A DNA stretch of 64,000 nt from Klebsormidium nitens (Eukaryota > Plantae > Klebsormidiophyceae): assembly GCA_000708835.1 (NCBI GenBank), contig DF237267.1, positions 39,284-103,283 of the forward strand, written 5' to 3'. Under the pieces are notes generated by a model. The model made no database searches and was not told where the DNA came from. It saw only the letters and a list, made by a program, of their open reading frames with translations. Each line of letters begins with the position of its first letter. The first letter of the stretch is position 1. Positions 52,701 through 63,030 of the stretch are shown here, one piece after another. Both the position numbers and the translations under genes were made by a program.

Positions 52701-55700
52701 GCTCGGGGTCGGAGAGACAAATACTGGGTCTAGCCAACTAGAGCGAGCAGCCGGAGCAGGAGAATAAGCGGAGCACGCTTCTCAAGGTAAGCTCCACGCA
52801 GTCCCTAGGGTTTTAGATCCAGGTTTTGTGATTTTGGAGACTCCAGCGCACCGACTTTGCGGTCACGCGTTCCGGACTGGAACGACAGCTGCTAGGGCTG
52901 ACCATCCAAAGCAAACAGCCAAAAGTGGAGACTAAGGGGAGCACGCTACTCAAGGTAAGCTCCACGCAGGTTTTAGAACCGTAGGGTTCTTGGTTTTAGG
53001 GTTTTGGGGTTTTGAGATTTCTGGGCGCCGACAATATGGTTACGCGCGCGGGGTCGGACGGGCAGGTACTGGGGCTGACCGTCCCAAGCGAACAGCCGGA
53101 ACAGGAGAAAAGGCGGAGTCCAGGGAAGCCGAGTTATACCTGAGGATCACCACGATTCTGCTAGGGCTCTCATCCAGGTCTTGACCGCACCATCTTTTCA
53201 TCTTCGTCGCAGACTGGCGAGGAGATGCGGGTCCAGTTGGCGTCTCTAGAGAAGCAGCTGCTGGAAGAGCTCGCGACTTCCCAGGGGAACATCCTGGACA
53301 ACCGGGCGCTAGTCGCGTCGCTCAACGAAACCAAGGCCAAGAGCACAACCGTCGCGGCGTCCCTGCTCGAGTCACAGGCACTTCAGGTGAGGGCCTCAAA
53401 CCCCCCCGTCAGGTCTCTTTTGAAAGCGTCTGTGACTTCGAAATGCCCAGGAAGCGAAAGAAAAGGACGCGCGTCTTCGTCACAAGCGTTATGTCCTGTA
53501 TCCATTGTCTGCTCGCGTGCATAGAAGATATGGAAGTTGGAGCCTGAAGAGCATGAAGCTTACAAACCTCAAGGTGGCTAAACAAGAAACAAAACCAAAA
53601 GCAGACTTCGGACAGCTTTCACTGCGAGAAAGCTCCTCGAACCCGTTCTCTGGTTCGTCCATTGTTCTCGTTGCCTCAGTTCTCAAACCATATGTCTCAC
53701 TTCGTTGGCCCTTCTCCCCACATTTTCCTGACGCTTTCCATGTTCCGTTCTTCTATAGCGGTCCCTCGACGCCCGGCGAGAAACCTACCGGCCACTCGCA
53801 GTCAGCGGTAGCCGACTCTATTTCCTCCTCAAGTCCCTTCCCGGTCTGAACCGGATGTACCATTTCAGTCTTTCCGCTTTCCTCCGGCTCTTCAAGAGCG
53901 TGCTAAGCCGGAAAAGCGCGGAGCCCGGAACGGAAGAGACGGACGGAACGGATCTGGTCGTGGATGGGCGGATCGCGGAATTGATGGACGGGCTGATCCA
54001 GACGGTGTTTGGACACGTGACGCGGTCCCTGTTTAAGGCGGATCGACTGACATTCGGCCTGCACTTAGCTCAGGTGAGCTTTAATCCTTGAATTTGCGTC
54101 GAACTTGATAGTTGGAGCGCTTAGACGCACTCTGATGTCCTCACTATCCAATCCTCGGACTGAAGCAGAATTTTCGTTTTGCCGGAACGTGCAAAATGCA
54201 TTGCTGTGGACGGAGCAGCGCGCAATTTGTACTCTTAACGTCATAGCATCTGCCCAGTTTCATAAAAACTTTGAAAAGAAAAAGCTTAGACGTACACGGG
54301 ACTGCATTATTACTTTCTTTTGTTCTGCCCAGCGCGAGAGCGACACAGTGGCATCTTTACAACTCGCTTCAAAAGCAGCCCGCACGAAAAGCTTCTATCT
54401 GGAGGCGCCTCGCTCCAAAATCTGATTGCAAAACCCAACTGGGCTGTGTCCGCGGTACAGGCCCTCCGACCGTGCGCCGCTGCGGAGTTGCAGCTGTTCA
54501 CCGGGCAGTCAGTGCTTCCCCCGGGCGTGCTCGGAGCGGAGCCGCTGTCTTGGGTTTCCGACAGCTGCCGAGCTTCTTTCAACGCCTTCCAGGTAAACAG
54601 GAAACGCCCGATCAGGGCATGTTAGTCAAGAGAGAGGCAGATTCAAGCCCTCAAACAAAGCACTGAATCTTCTGCGCGTATGTTCTCTATGTATTTGCCG
54701 GAAGCTCTTTCAGTGCGCGGCGAGGACTGCTTGCGCGCTCGAAAAGCGAAGCTCTTACTCTGAACCCATCGCTCGTATGCCTTTCATTTCTTGGTGCTTT
54801 GGTTGCTGTAAGACGAGTCTGCATCAAATTCTTAGAAGTGCAGTGTAGCCGAACGTGCATCCACCCCTCCTTTTGCAATTGGCCCTCCACATTCTTAAGC
54901 AAAGTCTAATCCTGATTTATGAAATAGGCCTTGACAGATATCTCCGTGCATATCCAGGCCACCCTGCCTCCCATCGCCCAAAACCTGGACTTCCAGAACA
55001 AGTCGAAGTGGTCCGCTTGGATGAGCAACGCTTCGGCCGAGACCGACTTCCCGCCACACGCGCTACCAATCACCACGCCCTTCCAGCGCCTTCTGCTGAT
55101 ACAGGTGCAGATCTTTGGTTTTGGTTGACCGACAAGAGTCTCGCGGTTTACTGCTGCCAGTCAAAGCATGCCCTCTGTGCTTTTGGGCCGAAAATTGTGC
55201 TTTTTAAACACTAGGGCAGGCGGTTCTTTCATGAATAACCCTTTGCACTTTCGGTCCCAGTCGTTTTTGCACTTCAACTGCAACGGAAAGATTGGCACTG
55301 GAAGGCGCTGCCTTGCTGCCCAGACGCAGTTCTCTTCATAACCCTACCTGTATTGACGACTGCCACAGGCGCTCCGCCCGGACCGGTTAGAGAGCGGCAT
55401 GGAGCTGTACGTGCGGTCCGTGCTGGGGCTGGCCAGCACGTCGCCAGAACCGTTCAGCCTGGGCAAGCTGCACCAGGAAACGACTGCGAAAGGTATGCAC
55501 ATTTTGAAATCAGGGTCTAGGGTTAGGTTCTAGGACTGGGTTACAAGACTAATTCATCAGCTTGCCTCTCGCACCCGAAATCCTGGGCATTTGCATCGGG
55601 AGAGACGTACCCGGTGAATATCTGCGGCGCGGGATTTGATTAAGAATACCCACCGAATCAGATGCAATTGACGTTAATCGTAAATGCATTCAATCAATGT

Positions 55701-58700
55701 AAAGCGGTAGGTCTAGCAACTGCGTAGATTAAAGGCGAGACTTTGTTAGGAGTACTTTCGACGGGTTGTGGTTAAGCAGCGGCCTAACAACCGACTAACC
55801 TCCTCGTAAAGCCCCTCCTGCGGAATCCTCGTGCTTCTTGCTTCATGCTTCTTCCATCCCCTTCTCTGTCGCTTCCACCACTGTCTGATCTGCGGAACAT
55901 TCTCTTCTTCATTCTATCTCTTGGCCTCTTTTCTTCATCCCCCCTTCTTCCTTGCCCTCAAAGCATCCAATTCTTCTCATTCTGAGTACTCGCGTTTCCC
56001 TCTCTTTTCCCAGAACCCGTCATTTTCATCACCAGCCCCGGCGCCGACCCCAGTCAGGAACTGGAGGAGTTCGCCGCGCGCGCGGTCGGCCCCGCGCGTT
56101 TCCGCCAGCTGGCCATGGGCCAGGGCCAGTCAGAAATTGCGCTCGCCATGCTCAAAGAAGCCGCGCGCGCGGGAGATTGGGTGTGCTTTAAGAATCTCCA
56201 TCTAGTTGTGACGTGGCTGCCCGCACTGGAGAAAGAGATTCACGGGTTGGACGCGCATCCGGACTTCCGGCTTTGGCTGACCAGGTGGGGTAACTCAATT
56301 TTTAACGCTGTGCTTGTTTGGAGGCTCGGCTCGAAAAGCGGGTTTCAAGGGCAAGGATTTGGAGCATCTAATCCCTTCTGGTCGTGTCAGTGCAACCCTC
56401 TCTTCGTGTTTTCGCGAAGAGATCAGCGTGGTAGCTCTTTATAGCTCTCCTCCTGCAAGTGACAAAATTTCCGTACCCTGAACCAGCCGCCCGCTTGAGC
56501 GCTTTTGGGGCCCTGAAGGGTAGGTATTCATAAATTGATCATCTATTTTGACCAGATTTAGACCCTGTTGGACCACAAGAATTTGCAGGTCGTTCCGTTT
56601 TTCCCGGGCAGCTAACCGTACGACCGCTGCCCTCAAGAGTTTGCTCACGGCATCCCTCAAGATAGAGTACAAGGCTTCTTTTAAGACAAGAAGAGAAAGA
56701 AATCTACATTCTTCCATCAAGCTAACCTGACCGGACCCTCAGCTAACTCGTTTCCATTCCGGGCGGCAAGGCATGGCCGCTTCAATTACAAGCCTCCCGA
56801 CGGCGTCCCTCAATGTTACATACAAGCAAAGTGGCATTGATAAATGCATCAAACCAATCCCTTCAACAAACGATTTCTCAATCGCATCCCAGACTCTATT
56901 CTTCCCTCTAGGCCTTTCGAATGTGTCGGTCAAGGTGACGGACGAGAACGTCTTACTGTCAAACCCTCAAGGTAAAGACCTTCCGATTCCGGGTTGTCCA
57001 AAACCGGTGCTGACCTGATCGCTTTCCCCGATCAGCGAGCCGCACGACCGCTTCCCCCCGAGTCTGCTGATGGCGTCACTCAAGGTGACGTACGAGGCGC
57101 CCCCCGGGCTCAAGAAGAATCTCCTGCGGACGTACGAAGCTTGGACGTCCGATTTCGTTGCGGACGGCGGAAGCACCGTCCGAGCGCAGCTGCTGTTCTT
57201 GCTGGCATGGTTCCATGCGATTGTGCAGGAGCGGCGGACGTTTGTGCCCCAGGTGAGGGTTGGCAAGCTTTAAGTTCGGGTTGAGGGTGAGGTGTCAATT
57301 GCGTGTGGATCGGTTTCTGGCAATGGTTTCAGCTTGAGGTTCACGAAGGGATTGTGGGTTGAGAACAAGAAAACGTTATTTAGTCGCGGTTGTTCGGGTC
57401 AGGGCAATTCAAAGGGCGGAGGCTGCAGCTAGTCTCAGGAAAGTTAGCACCTATGGTTGTATCCAATACCAGGGGCTAGGCTCTTTCTAGTACTGCGAAT
57501 AAAGTCCTTCTAGTCTAGCTAAGGCGCTTAGCTGGACCTCTGGTTGGTCGCCCTTGTATCCATTATCTCCTTTCTCTGAACCCCTCAAGCAAAGTGTACC
57601 GCTATATAGCAACGAGATGAGCAGCTTGAATCTTGCTGAAGGGAATCGTGAAATAACAACTCATCTTAAGGACGCCAACCTAGCTTTCCCAACGCGCAGG
57701 GCTGGAGCAAATTCTACGAGTTCAGCTTTGCCGACCTCCGCTCGGGGGCGGACATCGTCAGCATCGCAGTGAACCAAGCCCCCCCGAAAGGTCCAATCCC
57801 GTGGGAGTTCCTCCGAGGCTTACTCGAAAACGCAATCTATGGGGGACGCATCGACAACCGGTTCGACGTCCAAGTGTTGCGCGCGTATTTACACCAGTTC
57901 TTCCACGAGGGGATGCTGGCTGGGCCGGGCCAGCGGTTCGTACCGGGCACGAAAGGGGTGCTGGTGCCGGGGTCTTTGAAGCACGGGGAGTTTGTCGAAG
58001 TGCTCGGGGGACTGCCGGATGGTGACGCCCCGGCGCTTTTTGGGCTGCCGGCGAACATCGAGCGGAACGTGCAACAAACGAACAGGTGAGAAGGGAGGTT
58101 CTCCAAGCTCGTCACTTGCTGACGGGGTTGTGAAGGCAAGGCAGTAGGACCTTTCTTTTAGACGCAATGAAGGAAATGACTGCTAGTCGAGTTCGCTGTG
58201 CTTTGCACATCGTTTCGATGGCGTTTTATTCCAGTCTTCCGAGGCTTTGAGGATCGAACAAGCCATGCAAAAACTCTTCTTGTTAGCTTCAATCCACTAC
58301 CAAATCTGACAGGAAAGACTTGCAGCTCGGAAGCTGATTCGTGTCGCCTGCCTTACCCGCCACAGAATAATCCTTGAGAACAAGGTTTCAAAACCCAGCA
58401 AAATGACCGCTTAGATCACGCACAACAAACGTAAACCAGGACTTTCCTTTTTGTTGCAGCGCCAATGTTGTGGCCCAGTTGAAGATGCTGTCCTTCGCGT
58501 CGCCCGAAACGGCGACCGGGGAGTTCGACCGGGGCAGGTGGTCCGAGCAGCTCAGGCCCGTCATCGAGCTGTGGGACCGACTGCTGGGAGAGCTCGGGGG
58601 TCTGGACCGGGTGTGCAGGTGAGCTCGTACTGCCAAGAAGTTGGTCTTAAAGTCTGATGACTTATGTACTTTTGGGAGCGCTCCGCACGAGAATGAAAAC

Positions 58701-61173
58701 ATGCTTCCTCTCCTGGTGTGATATGTGAAGATTTGAGAGCCGATAGAACAACGCCGATAAGCCGTTATCGGCTTTGCTTTGGCTGCCAATCATGTGCGCT
58801 GTGCCCTAAAGAGGATTGACAAGTCACCAGTTTGTTTGGTTGGATTTCGTTTTGTCTGCCGGTAAATCGCCCCGTTCTCGAGCGGCTCTGAGTATCCGTT
58901 CTAGCGGCAGCTTCTTCTTCCTCGCCTCTTTTGTTCTGATACTAACAGAGACCCACTCACAACGTTACAAAACCGTATCTGTTACGCTGCTTCTTGCTTA
59001 TACAATACCAGCAAACAGGTGATAAGACCAACGTCTAAATTCGACCTTCTTCACCTTCAGAGTCGAGCAAGAGCCCGAGGACGCCACCCCGACCGAGTCC
59101 GCCATCTTCCGGGAAAGCCAGCTGGCAGCTTCACTTGTCAGAGCGATCTCGAACATCCTCGGGGGAATCCACCGGGCGCTCTCGGGGCAGGGCTTGCTCT
59201 CTCCCGACGCTCTAACGTCCTGCAAGGCGCTGCTCGGTAGTACTGTCCCGAGCTCTTGGGACCGCCTTTGGGAGGTGAGACAAAGGTTTCTATAGACACC
59301 TGCAATGAAGATCCTGGAGGTTATAACATCTCTGCTTGCGTCGGCGGCGTGTAAGCTGGCAAGCCTTGTCCTCAGAAAAGAGCCATTGACGGTGCCGGGG
59401 AAATTATCCGCGGATTCATACTGATCTTGTCTTATAGAGGTCGCTTGTCAGCTTCCCTACGAAACCGTTTTTTGACTGCGGCTAAGAGGTGAGAAGCTAT
59501 AGCGGAACTGATGAGCTCAAAGAAACCACCTGATTCTGGATCTTTTGCACGTATACCCCCTGAAAATTCGGTCTTCCACCTTATCCTTCTTTCTACAATA
59601 TTGTTCCATCTACGGGTGTAGCCAAAACAATGCGCGTTTTCAAGGAAACCAGCAGTCTGTTCTGTTCCGTCTCATTGATCAAATTGCTCGCTTGTCTTTA
59701 CAGGGCCCTGAGGAGCCCTCCGCGTACCTCCAAGCGCTTTTCTCGCGCGTGGCCGCGCAGCCGGCGCTCCGGGCTGCCGCAAAATCCGGAAGTCTTCCCT
59801 CCAGAGGGAGCTCTCTAGATCTTAGCCATCTGTTCAGTCCCGAGACCTTTCTGAATGCGCTCCGACAGCAGACCGCTAGGCGGCGGAACATGGCCATGGA
59901 CGAGATGAAGCTGGCCACCGCGTGGAATTCGGAGCTTTTGGGCGACGCGGCCGCAGACGCGCTGCAGGTGCGTGTCGCCCTTTTGGGTCCATTCCATTGC
60001 TTGCCTTCTTGCTGTTCGAGGAAGCACAAGAGGGGCTGACTCTAATTTTCTGGATAAAAGGAAGGTGCGACTTGGATAGAATGGCCTTCGAGAAGTCTTG
60101 GATACCTTCTGAGGAAGTATTGCCGCAGAATCGATCTCTGTGCTGACGCATGGTGATCATTGAAGTCTGCAAACTCTCCTCTTTGGGTCTCTTTCCGGAA
60201 TCCGGACCCCTTCAGAACCCGGTTTCTCAGTCAGAAAATGTCTGTCTTTCCGATTTGGAAATCGGAGCACTTTCTTGACCGCGTCCTCTGTTTCCTAAAG
60301 CGCATTGCTTACACGGTCCTTCTTCCGGTCACACGATTCGAATGACAAGGCCACGTCCAGTAGAATCAGCAAAGCAAGCCATTCCGCCAGCATATCCGAT
60401 ATCGAAGCTTCTTGTCTCTGTGCAGGTGACGTCACTGCTGATCCAAGGAGCCTCCTTCGACGGAAAGAAACTGGCTGACGTCGCCCATGACGCACCATTT
60501 GCCCAGACGATGCCTACGGTCTACATGGCATGGATCGCGAAGGTGGGCGGCGCTGAATTACAAGCCCTGGATTTCATAACTCGATTCTGTCTCAAAGGCT
60601 GCTCGTGGGTTTATTGTTCAGGATCCTGCTCCGCTCTGCTATGTTGTTGGAAGGACTGCATGAAGCCCGCCGCTGCATGGGTGAATGGCTTCGTTTTTTC
60701 GGTACTAGGCCCTACATCAATAAAGAGAAGATACTTGGTTCTGAAGGGCATGGGAAGCACCTATCCCTTGTCGTCGGTTCTGGGTTTTAGGAAATTTGCT
60801 ACTCAGACCACGTAGATTTTATTCCCTCAACTCCTTATTTTTCGTTGCGCCCAATGTCATACTATAATCCCGAGCCTGACACTATGAGCAGCAAATAGAT
60901 TTTGCACTTGGAAGCTTTCCCAAATCATGCACATATCCAGGTTATGGACCAACGAGTGCTCGTCGAAATCAGCTCACAAGTCGCACTTGCACTGACACGT
61001 CCGTATTCGCCGCGCAGGGATCGCCGTACCCGTACAAGGAACACCTGGCAATTCCGCTGTACAACGACCTGGGCCGGACGCGCTTCTTGTCCGAGCTACA
61101 GCTGCCCCTCGCCAAGGCGTCCGAAAGGGACCGCTGGATATTGACTGGGCTCGCAGCATTTGTACAAGGTTGA
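25772..61173 (+). CDS. DYNC2H1: Cytoplasmic dynein-2 heavy chain (IFT dynein, DHC1b orthologue)
   Basis: 52 phase-consistent exons, 12,999 nt: 25772-25915, 26333-26389, 26735-26968, 27478-27735, 28045-28464, 28836-29123, 29433-29533, 30082-30184, 30463-30554, 30898-31039, 31469-31543, 31843-32061, 32369-32602, 32979-33145, 33530-33628, 34206-34350, 34804-35061, 35376-37025, 37482-37658, 38136-38504, 39070-39228, 39855-40049, 40520-40705, 41123-41413, 41921-42100, 42728-43006, 43431-44180, 44723-45012, 45360-45612, 46155-46361, 46844-47077, 47501-47719, 48280-48501, 48815-49354, 49979-50236, 50607-50804, 51135-51398, 51829-52022, 52419-52590, 53213-53386, 53759-54073, 54461-54592, 54958-55104, 55369-55492, 56014-56284, 57036-57252, 57700-58085, 58460-58618, 59061-59274, 59704-59967, 60426-60542, 61018-61173. 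P-loops AAA1 [11 protein letters not shown]2 GPSGTGKT, AAA3 GPEGAGKT, and the dynein-2-type AAA4 GRSGVGRR; CFDEFNRL; stalk [10 protein letters not shown]-like [19 protein letters not shown]. Confidence 0.95.
26969..27477 (+). other. GC-AG intron 3 of the dynein gene
   Basis: TTG CAG|GCGAGC...TTGCAG|GAC gives the in-frame junction CDKHLQ|DLLVELESG. Confidence 0.75.
31121..31163 (+). repeat. Intronic copy of dynein exon 10 3' end plus donor
   Basis: 34/38 nt identical to 31002-31039, followed by GTCAG. Confidence 0.9.
32145..32217 (+). repeat. Intronic copy of an internal part of dynein exon 12
   Basis: Translates [23 protein letters not shown] versus exon [23 protein letters not shown]. Confidence 0.9.
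39322..39550 (+). repeat. Two intronic copies of dynein exon 21 3' end plus donor
   Basis: 39322-39381 and 39486-39544 copy 39169-39228; each ends attcag|GTGGGCT. Confidence 0.9.
40369..40452 (+). repeat. Intronic copy of dynein exon 23 acceptor plus 5' end
   Basis: ctctacag|gtgactttgacctcggaacg...ttcaggacgccaaatcgctggg...ctcttctctctgg parallels ctcacag|gtgaacctcatatcggagggattccaggacgccaagaccctcgg...cttttctccctgg, with indels. Confidence 0.8.
44538..44633 (+). repeat. Intronic copy of dynein exon 28 acceptor plus 5' end
   Basis: gcag|[24 protein letters not shown] aligns without gaps to gcag|[24 protein letters not shown], then reaches TGA at 44631. Confidence 0.8.
46709..46794 (+). repeat. 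Intronic copy of dynein exon 31 acceptor plus 5' end
   Basis: gcag|gtagattacatgcatcgcatggaacttgtc... parallels ccag|gtggcatacatgcaccacatggacctcgtc...; frameshifted by deletions. Confidence 0.9.
47765..47964 (+). repeat. Two intronic copies of dynein exon 32 3' end plus donor
   Basis: 47765-47838|GTAAGG and 47887-47958|GTTGGC copy ...aaccccgcgctctttgccagctgcgcg...gagcgtatgcgg|GTAAGC. Confidence 0.9.
52690..53125 (+). repeat. Three intronic copies of dynein exon 39 3' part
   Basis: About 52691-52786|GTAAGC (internal TAG), 52847-52954|GTAAGC (open frame), and about 53030-53125 (most degenerate), all copying 52483-52590. Confidence 0.9.
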
Positions 61174-61747: not shown

Positions 61748-63030
61748 CTAGGCGCAGCCACACTGTGAGAGGACACGCTGGTCACTTCTGGGCAGCGCGC
61801 CGAGTGACCCGTTAATTGCCCCGGGCATGACGCAGTAGTTGCTCAACCGGTTGTTCCCGCCCCGGGCCTGCGCGTGCATGTGATCCATCTCGGCATCGAT
61901 CCGCTTGGAGAACCCGAGGCCGAATCCCCGGGTTTTCAGAGCGTTCCAGGTACTCCTCGTGGACATCTCCCGGTTGCCGACTTCTGCAGGACGTGGACAG
62001 ACCGCCCGCCAGTTAGAGGACAACAGACTGTGACCATCTTATTCGAAAAGCTGCAACTCAATGGATGAAGTCGGACATCAAGTATGGGTCTTCGTGAGCT
62101 AGTCTCGATGCTGAGTACCTTGTAACCTCTTGCTTCTTGCTTTTGAGCGTCCCACCATGAAAGTTGCCCCGTCTTTTGGCCGTGTATGTTTTGTTCCAGC
62201 AGAGTATTATGAGCGGTCCGGCGCGACTGTTTCTTCTCAGCACTGTTTTGGTGGCGTGGCTGGGGGTTACACCAGATGCACGACCTTTACAGCGAGACGA
62301 ACATTTTCCCAATCTCCTTTGAAAGAAGGAAGGTCATCGTTCAATGCTGAGATGCGTTCAATCATTCCTAAGCCCGGCCAAGTACTCAGAAACTGAGTAC
62401 CTCAAACTGAGTCTTTCCTAACAGCCTTCAAGCTTTACAAGTAATGATTCTCAACAAGTTTGTCGACCTATACAATGCATATTGTAGTGGCAAAGACAAC
62501 AACTGTACATGTTCACAGGAAAATGCAGACACGTTCTCAACTCCTTGCTTGACACGGCCTAGACTCCTCAAAGGTCTGCCGACGAAAATACTCCAGAAAG
62601 CCTCTTTGAAGCATTGAGCAGCTCGTGCTTTACGCGATGCAGGTTGTCCCTCTGGAAAGTTTGTAGCTGTCTGGTTCGGACACGTAAGCTCACCAGCTCG
62701 CAACAGCCGCAAACCAACGCTGTTCGTCTCCCTGATCAGCTTCATGTCTCGCGCTGACACTTCCACGCACCGCTGCACGCCGCACAGCGTTGTCGGACCT
62801 TCTTGCCTCCTCGACGTGCCACGTGGCGGCTCCTCCCGAGCCCTGGTCAAGTACTCGCACGTCCGTATGTTGTGGCCTTCCAAACCGCAGTTGCTACAGT
62901 GCCGTCCTACAGAAGATCTGCTGTCCGGAATCGGGCGGCGAACGGAACTAGACTGGGAGGACTTTGGACGCGCGCCGCCGCCGCAGGTCCGTCTGTTGTG
63001 GCCCTCTTGGCCGCATATGCCGCAGGCCAT
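61748..63030 (-). CDS. Small protein with two CCHC zinc knuckles and a C-terminal HNH/HNN endonuclease-like motif
   Basis: ATG at 63030 is preceded by an in-frame TAG. CGICGQEGHNRRTC and CSNCGLEGHNIRTC fit CX2CX4HX4C. Donor G|GTGAGC after 62694 is phase-compatible with acceptor CTGCAG|AA at 61983, giving 573 nt/190 aa containing DHMHAQARGGNNRLSNYCVMPGAINGSLG. A symmetric middle exon 62284-62156 is possible. Knuckles are certain; splicing and the HNH call are inference. Confidence 0.7.

Follow-up and report, generated by a model that had tools for sequence, protein, structure and literature searches.

What does a small gene that joins two zinc knuckles to an HNH-like tail encode, and is the tail a nuclease? 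The gene lies on the minus strand, at positions 61748 to 63030, of a 64,000-nucleotide stretch of DNA from the alga Klebsormidium nitens (contig DF237267.1, positions 39,284 to 103,283 of the forward strand); this whole stretch is what we call the window. A prediction made from the letters alone (the original prediction) had read the locus as an uncharacterised fusion of CCHC knuckles and an HNH nuclease. We find that it is a real two-exon gene of K. nitens, with its structure and its coding character both shown from the sequence. For the product, the reading that we hold with moderate confidence is a knuckle protein with a divergent, zinc-less His-Me (HNH) finger at about residues 114 to 190, which would nick or cut nucleic acid; this reading draws on sequence comparison and on structure models.

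Gene structure and zinc knuckles

Exon 1 (62694..63030, minus strand) begins with the ATG at 63030, which has an in-frame stop three codons 5' of it, and encodes residues 1-112 together with the first base of codon 113. It is followed by a phase-1 GT-AG intron of 710 nucleotides (61984..62693, minus strand), with the donor reading CTG/GTGAGC at 62694/62693 and a pyrimidine-rich acceptor reading CCTGCAG/AA at 61984/61983. Exon 2 (61748..61983, minus strand) encodes residues 113-190 and ends with the stop codon at 61750-61748. The spliced translation of 190 residues is letter-identical to the public K. nitens protein KFL_003180100 (GAQ86889.1, our P0001), with residues 1-112 matched by exon 1 and residues 114-190 by exon 2. 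The intron and the 190-residue open reading frame (ORF) of the original prediction are thus those of the public annotation, and its word "uncharacterised" holds as well, the record carrying no functional name: GAQ86889.1 is called only "hypothetical protein" and, in UniProt, "CCHC-type domain-containing protein".

The next question is whether this annotation could be wrong, with exon 1 ending inside the intron as a read-through of about 200 residues and the exon 2 ORF being a separate one. Such a read-through would be like the only relative of the protein, P0002 (187 residues, without an accession; its contig, of 2,982 bp, belongs to a run-level assembly), which is an unspliced ORF call, and no run-level (Logan) assembly is on record as a source of P0001 itself. 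The base composition, however, argues for the splice. The GC content at third codon positions (GC3) is 0.71 in exon 1 and drops to 0.47 directly past the donor; the intron has a GC content of 0.48 and a GC3 of 0.46-0.49 in every frame, without codon periodicity; and from the acceptor onward GC3 is 0.82 in the frame demanded by the phase-1 splice. This last value belongs to the top 0.4% of all 234-nucleotide stretches of the window and is on par with the exons of the neighbouring dynein gene (0.67-0.83). The minus-strand frame is the sole fully open frame of the exon 2 stretch, and the minus strand holds no other upstream exon or start for this ORF. With canonical splice sites in addition, we regard a wrong annotation as very improbable.

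The relative P0002 shares with the K. nitens protein the start M-A-C-G, the knuckles and a block at residues 83-112, and has three knuckles, the third of which stands where K. nitens has a gap. At the intron point it reads L-R-A-G-E, which fits a conserved G/GTGAG donor. Because P0002 runs into the sequence of the K. nitens intron, it is uninformative on exon 2.

Two side observations concern the intron. The acceptor is of the tandem NAGNAG type (CAG/AAG, 61981-61987, minus strand), with a second AG 3 nucleotides downstream and in frame, the use of which would drop a single residue, E113. Within the intron, at 62221-62340 on the minus strand, GC3 read in the exon 1 frame briefly climbs to 0.70 without an accompanying ORF; this rise is probably noise.

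Exon 1 carries the two knuckles of the form CX2CX4HX4C that the original prediction had reported, both recovered by a pattern scan of the minus-strand reading. Knuckle 1 (62983..63024) is C3-x2-C6-x4-H11-x4-C16, and knuckle 2 (62857..62898) is C45-x2-C48-x4-H53-x4-C58. They are the only two copies of this pattern in the six-frame translation of the window, against an expectation of 0.065 (here and below, expected motif counts are taken from 200 Markov-1 random windows). In Pfam, knuckle 1 matches zf-CCHC_2 over residues 3-16 (E 4.8e-4 for the protein; 20.3 bits, under the gathering score of 27), and knuckle 2 matches zf-CCHC_4 over residues 43-60 (15.7 bits, likewise under a gathering score of 27). 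A motif of 18 residues usually scores below threshold against profiles. When the PDB is searched with phmmer, knuckle 1 matches an Xrn-type knuckle and knuckle 2 matches the knuckles of HIV-1 nucleocapsid. The two DNA copies (62856-62899 and 62982-63025) are 75% identical over 44 nucleotides, and are therefore an internal duplication; knuckle 1 is kept in P0002.

After the knuckles comes a basic, Ser/Arg-rich linker and then the conserved block of residues 83-112 (62695..62784, minus strand), which reads C-G-x2-R-C-V-x-V-S-A-R-D-M ... L-R-A and has no family match. Apart from the knuckles, no part of the alignment with P0002 is conserved as well as this block, and its C83 and C88 are the same in both known members of the family.

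The HNH-like tail

We turn our attention to exon 2. The HNH-like core (residues 141-174; 61799..61900, minus strand) has D146-H147, G154-G155, N161, N170 and G174, and has no zinc cysteines. The pattern D-H-x6-GG-x-N-x3-N-x8-N-x-S-x-G, which the original prediction had placed at 61885 on the minus strand, is there, and the window holds no second copy of it in any of the six reading frames. The random expectation is 0.05 for the reduced form DH-x13-N-x8-N and less than 0.005 once the GG is required.

The original prediction had further claimed that the spacing matches the HNH consensus position for position. Set against 14 canonical phage HNH domains the spacing is exact: GG follows DH at +6, N follows GG at +5, N161 is followed by N170 at +9 and G174 comes 4 residues later. 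H147 is thereby 14 residues from N161 and 23 from N170, column for column as in the phage domains, with the lysine of CN-x-x-KG being a leucine in the alga. The claimed replacement of the zinc-binding CxxC by PGAI is also found: P166-G-A-I169, immediately ahead of N170, takes the place of the second CxxC. Nothing corresponds to the first CxxC, the 50 residues upstream of D146 containing no such pair. A structural zinc site of this kind marks the zinc-bearing subgroup and is no hallmark of the His-Me superfamily as a whole. The catalytic residues D146-H147, N161 and N170 are all retained.

Does this tail resemble any family when whole profiles are used? With the 91-residue ORF as the query, Pfam HNH (PF01844) matches residues 142-161 with E 0.078 and 13.6 bits. 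In PHROGs, a library in which about 87% of the families have no function, each of the four matches is to an endonuclease VII or HNH endonuclease family (E 0.037-0.086), with 47 residues covered in one case. A tblastn search of 50,697 phage records gives matches with E 0.8-9, mostly within genes annotated as HNH endonuclease, and the phage genes matched are RRXRR+HNH proteins according to Pfam. In the local match the phage sequence E-H-I-H-P-K-[SA]-[KR]-G-G-x-N-R-[IV]-S-N-L is aligned to D-H-M-H-A-Q-A-R-G-G-N-N-R-L-S-N-Y of the alga. NCBIfam and PADLOC give no match, Pfam HNH_4 gives none even at E 10, and the PDB search with phmmer finds no HNH chain.

We also used an independent profile, built from the 14 phage HNH domains and seeded from one phage protein, with none of the domains being a match of the algal query. 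Exon 2 obtains 13.6 bits from this profile, over residues 141-163, and is thereby the best of the 1,032 stop-free stretches of the window (the runner-up has 9.2 bits). Among 50,000 shuffles of exon 2 that preserve its composition, 3 score as high (p about 6e-5), a per-sequence value that is not significant genome-wide. The number of effective trials is few, however, because the motif was probably reached by first noticing the knuckles.

Structure models give a second view of the tail. The ESM Atlas model of the protein has a mean predicted local distance difference test score (pLDDT) of 0.70 and a predicted template modelling score of 0.56. For residues 114-190, the ten nearest ESM Atlas models align over 64-72 residues with template modelling (TM) scores of 0.58-0.67, where a TM score above 0.5 means little for stretches as short as this. 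A Pfam family is recorded for seven of these ten, and in every one of the seven it is HNH, HNH_4, HNH_5, RRXRR+HNH or endonuclease VII. The ESM feature search returns families of the His-Me clan only, with scores of 0.87-0.90, in a range (below 0.9) that the calibration of the tool calls "a lead only". The absence of any HNH or His-Me match, in profile or in structure, had been named beforehand as the outcome that would speak against the prediction; weak matches of both kinds are found.

How far do such matches carry? Several points, to which the two calibration limits just given belong, weigh against reading the tail as HNH. The Pfam HNH score lies under the curated cut-off (13.6 against 21.4 bits) and is 8.4 bits on the whole protein. 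The signal of the hidden Markov model is limited to a core of 23 residues (141-163), the profile columns flanking this core align no better than they do to shuffles (p 0.2-0.6), and the hhalign probability is 16.6%. In a six-frame genome of about 100 Mb, which we take to be the size of that of K. nitens, several matches of 13 bits are expected by chance when the window is extrapolated. The tail retains none of the four zinc ligands, and it has lost the DHxxP proline and the CNxxKG lysine as well. The searches made give no homologues of exon 2 with which the HNH residues could be compared. AlphaFold2, run without an alignment, gives a pLDDT of 36 for the whole protein and of 48 for exon 2, both unusable. 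The core is similar, too, to an ankyrin repeat and to the final helix of a GGDEF domain; the GGDEF match shows that A-x-R-G-G-x-N-R occurs in unrelated folds.

The last two resemblances were taken up as candidates and rejected. The PDB search ranks first a GGDEF cyclase, matched in its C-terminal helix (domain E 0.37); we judge this a local coincidence of A-x-R-G-G-x-N-R. When exon 2 is compared exhaustively by phmmer with 1.84 billion representative sequences, only the protein itself and one spurious ankyrin-repeat protein are returned. This protein of 1110 residues is scored through six summed repeats and matches by coincidence of the string L-H-x-A-x-R-G-G-N-x5-N-Y, which is present once in exon 2; there is no Pfam Ank match at E 10.

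Taken at full weight, these points would make the gene product a CCHC RNA-binding protein and nothing else, with the C-terminal 77 residues being some other lineage-specific fold, or partly disordered, and the HNH-like string arising by chance. The short signal, its unremarkable flanks, the genome-wide statistics, the low hhalign probability, the missing zinc ligands, the AlphaFold2 result and the two spurious matches of the same string all fit such a chance origin. They leave unexplained why three independent profile libraries and the phage tblastn search pick His-Me families alone, why the ESM Atlas model aligns to HNH models over nearly the whole exon, and why the last Asn and Gly, which lie beyond the scored core, keep the canonical distance; a nuclease would, moreover, suit knuckles that bind nucleic acid. 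We consider the chance reading rather unlikely. An HNH-derived fold is the best single reading of the tail, because the shuffle statistics, the agreement of the libraries on one superfamily and the whole-domain match of the language model point the same way. From these comparisons and models we hold the fold to be fairly probable; membership in the superfamily is not established.

If the fold is HNH-derived, is the domain active? The tail may instead be a true HNH derivative that is catalytically dead, a pseudo-nuclease kept as a module for binding nucleic acid or protein. The loss of the four zinc cysteines, of the DHxxP proline and of the CNxxKG lysine fits such a loss of function, and no relative shows selection on the catalytic residues. 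On the other side, D146, H147, N161 and N170 are kept at exact spacing, a point that is weakened by the domain having been recognised only through these residues. Active HNH domains without zinc exist. Many His-Me fingers, indeed, lack the zinc knuckle (Jablonska et al. 2017, PMC5714182). A dead domain of this kind seems to us unlikely. Nuclease activity, for its part, is less probable than the fold, since the domain has lost the zinc site that would stabilise it, and since it was the catalytic residues themselves that drew attention to it. From the sequence we would put activity forward tentatively, as possible and somewhat doubtful. The nuclease claim of the original prediction therefore stands in part: all the weak matches (Pfam HNH, the four PHROGs, the phage genes and the ESM Atlas models) are to His-Me proteins, but all profiles are below threshold and the signal spans 23 residues.

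With the knuckle protein bearing a zinc-less HNH finger as the preferred reading, a set of steps can be proposed for its action. The CCHC knuckles, with one zinc each, would grip single-stranded RNA or DNA. The linker and the block of residues 83-112 would lead into the small C-terminal domain at about residues 114-190. In this domain H147 would be the general base, D146 and N170 would hold one divalent metal, and N161 would brace the beta-hairpin, so placed that the finger could nick or cut the nucleic acid brought by the knuckles. We may speculate that block 83-112 packs against the finger and replaces the lost zinc site, and, equally as speculation, that a replacement site might be built from C83, C88 and the C187-x-C189 of the C-terminus.

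Relatives, origin and meaning

Where does the gene come from? For exon 2, a word search with its ORF gives no candidate beyond the phmmer result described above. For the protein as a whole, a profile search with P0001 and P0002 returns generic multi-knuckle plant proteins only. Viral contigs and prokaryotic genomes hold no related locus, and metagenomes give 44 loci with the knuckles only and no match to the tail. The gene is an orphan with two known members, and the best explanation is that it is single-copy, nuclear and restricted to the Klebsormidium lineage.

The knuckle matches have features of their own. The 44 metagenome contigs (L003-L046, mostly marine, from Tara and JGI) have two knuckles worded "C-x-x-C-G-Q-E-G-H-N-R-R-T-C", followed by unrelated sequence; examples are L008:1898-2224, L010:503-748 and L012:6001-6240, and one protein, P0012, has 233 residues and no Pfam domain on record. 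P0004 and P0006, from run-level assemblies, are of the plant type, starting with K-x-I-H-x-D-P-x-L-x-A-Q-R-V-A-A-I-K-K-A-K-G and continuing with 4-8 CCHC knuckles.

The original prediction had suggested a domesticated viral or mobile-element sequence, and descent from a mobile element or virus, by domestication or decay, would account for two observations: CCHC knuckles are typical of the Gag proteins of retroelements, and the best sequence matches of the HNH-like core are phage proteins. Around the gene, however, the window has no paralogue of it, no reverse transcriptase near it and no flanking repeats, the sole repeat being the internal duplication of the knuckles. In its codon bias the gene resembles the host, and it carries a spliceosomal intron. 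The search of the 1.84 billion representatives finds nothing related to exon 2, the exon 1 profile finds P0002 and generic plant knuckle proteins, and the viral, prokaryotic and metagenome collections give the results stated above. We see no support for a recent origin from a virus or transposon, this part of the original prediction is not borne out, and we regard a mobile-element or viral piece as improbable. We give as little credence to a bolder scenario, in which the Klebsormidium lineage would have built a minimal nuclease, or domesticated one from a retroelement ORF2, by combining Gag-type knuckles, a zinc-less HNH and a new cysteine site (C83, C88 and C187-x-C189) into a host factor acting on the replication intermediates of retroelements or viruses. 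Rfam places no RNA family around the gene.

The neighbour of the gene is a dynein heavy chain, as the original prediction had it, with dynein domains on the plus strand and the knuckle gene converging on them from the minus strand. The 3' part of the dynein gene, with many introns, spans 53225-60815 on the plus strand. Successive ORF pieces trace it as far as about 60.0-60.8 kb through their Pfam matches (AAA_9, the D6 P-loop region, AAA lid 11 and Dynein_C). No more than about 1 kb separates the end of the dynein gene from the knuckle gene's stop codon, and the two genes are arranged tail to tail.

What would the protein mean if it is as we read it? A search of the full-text literature found no paper describing a fusion of CCHC knuckles and HNH. 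The protein is public but unstudied, its tail is unannotated, and neither of its modules is unusual in itself. What is modestly new is that the two are combined, that zinc has been lost and that the lineage is narrow; the interest lies chiefly in annotation. Should the tail be an active HNH domain, the protein would be among the smallest eukaryotic nuclear nucleases, and it would bring together knuckles of the retroelement type and a zinc-less His-Me finger, a combination not reported before, in a basal streptophyte. With 190 residues and one point mutant, it would then also be a cheap test case for the recruitment of phage-type nuclease modules by eukaryotes. Should the tail not be HNH, the result would come down to a note on the annotation of an orphan CCHC protein, and would also illustrate that an HNH core of 23 residues cannot carry a family assignment at genome scale.

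Comparison with known CCHC and HNH proteins

Two groups of known systems can be compared with the protein, one for each of its modules. With the CCHC proteins (retroviral nucleocapsid, CNBP/HEXBP-type proteins, plant CCHC proteins and the Xrn knuckle) it has in common the exact C-x2-C-x4-H-x4-C units, and its knuckles are of the plant-type form "G-H-N-x-R-T-C". None of the CCHC proteins compared has the block of residues 83-112 or the HNH-like tail.

For the tail, the closest systems are the small HNH endonucleases of phages and bacteria (PF01844, PF14279 and the RRXRR+HNH module). The core spacing D/E-H-x6-GG-x5-N-x8-N-x3-G is identical in these enzymes and in the alga, the phage RRXRR+HNH proteins are 42% identical to the algal core over 24 residues, and the phage and bacterial HNH families are the structural neighbours of the ESM Atlas model. 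Two of the phage proteins, from Microcoleus and Ralstonia phages (L001:880-2157 and L002:356-1771), have 425-471 residues with RRXRR followed by HNH (Pfam E 1e-68 and 1e-12), a layout that we take to be that of IscB-like proteins; they are named "hypothetical protein" in GenBank and "HNH endonuclease" in RefSeq. Unlike the zinc-bearing phage and bacterial domains, the algal tail is without both CxxC pairs, without the proline after DH and without the lysine after the last Asn. The algal protein also differs in having no RRXRR or other prokaryotic partner domain, in being encoded by a eukaryotic nuclear gene with an intron, and in its profile score, which lies under threshold.

The zinc-less HNH_4 domains (PF13395; Cas9-type) offer a different comparison. 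Like the algal tail, they have no cysteine zinc site, and clusters of HNH_4 are among the nearest ESM Atlas neighbours. Unlike the Cas9-type domain, which is an insertion in a RuvC nuclease, the algal protein is small and stands alone. The His, Asn(+14), Asn(+23) spacing of H147, N161 and N170 in the alga is also that of H840, N854 and N863 in SpCas9.

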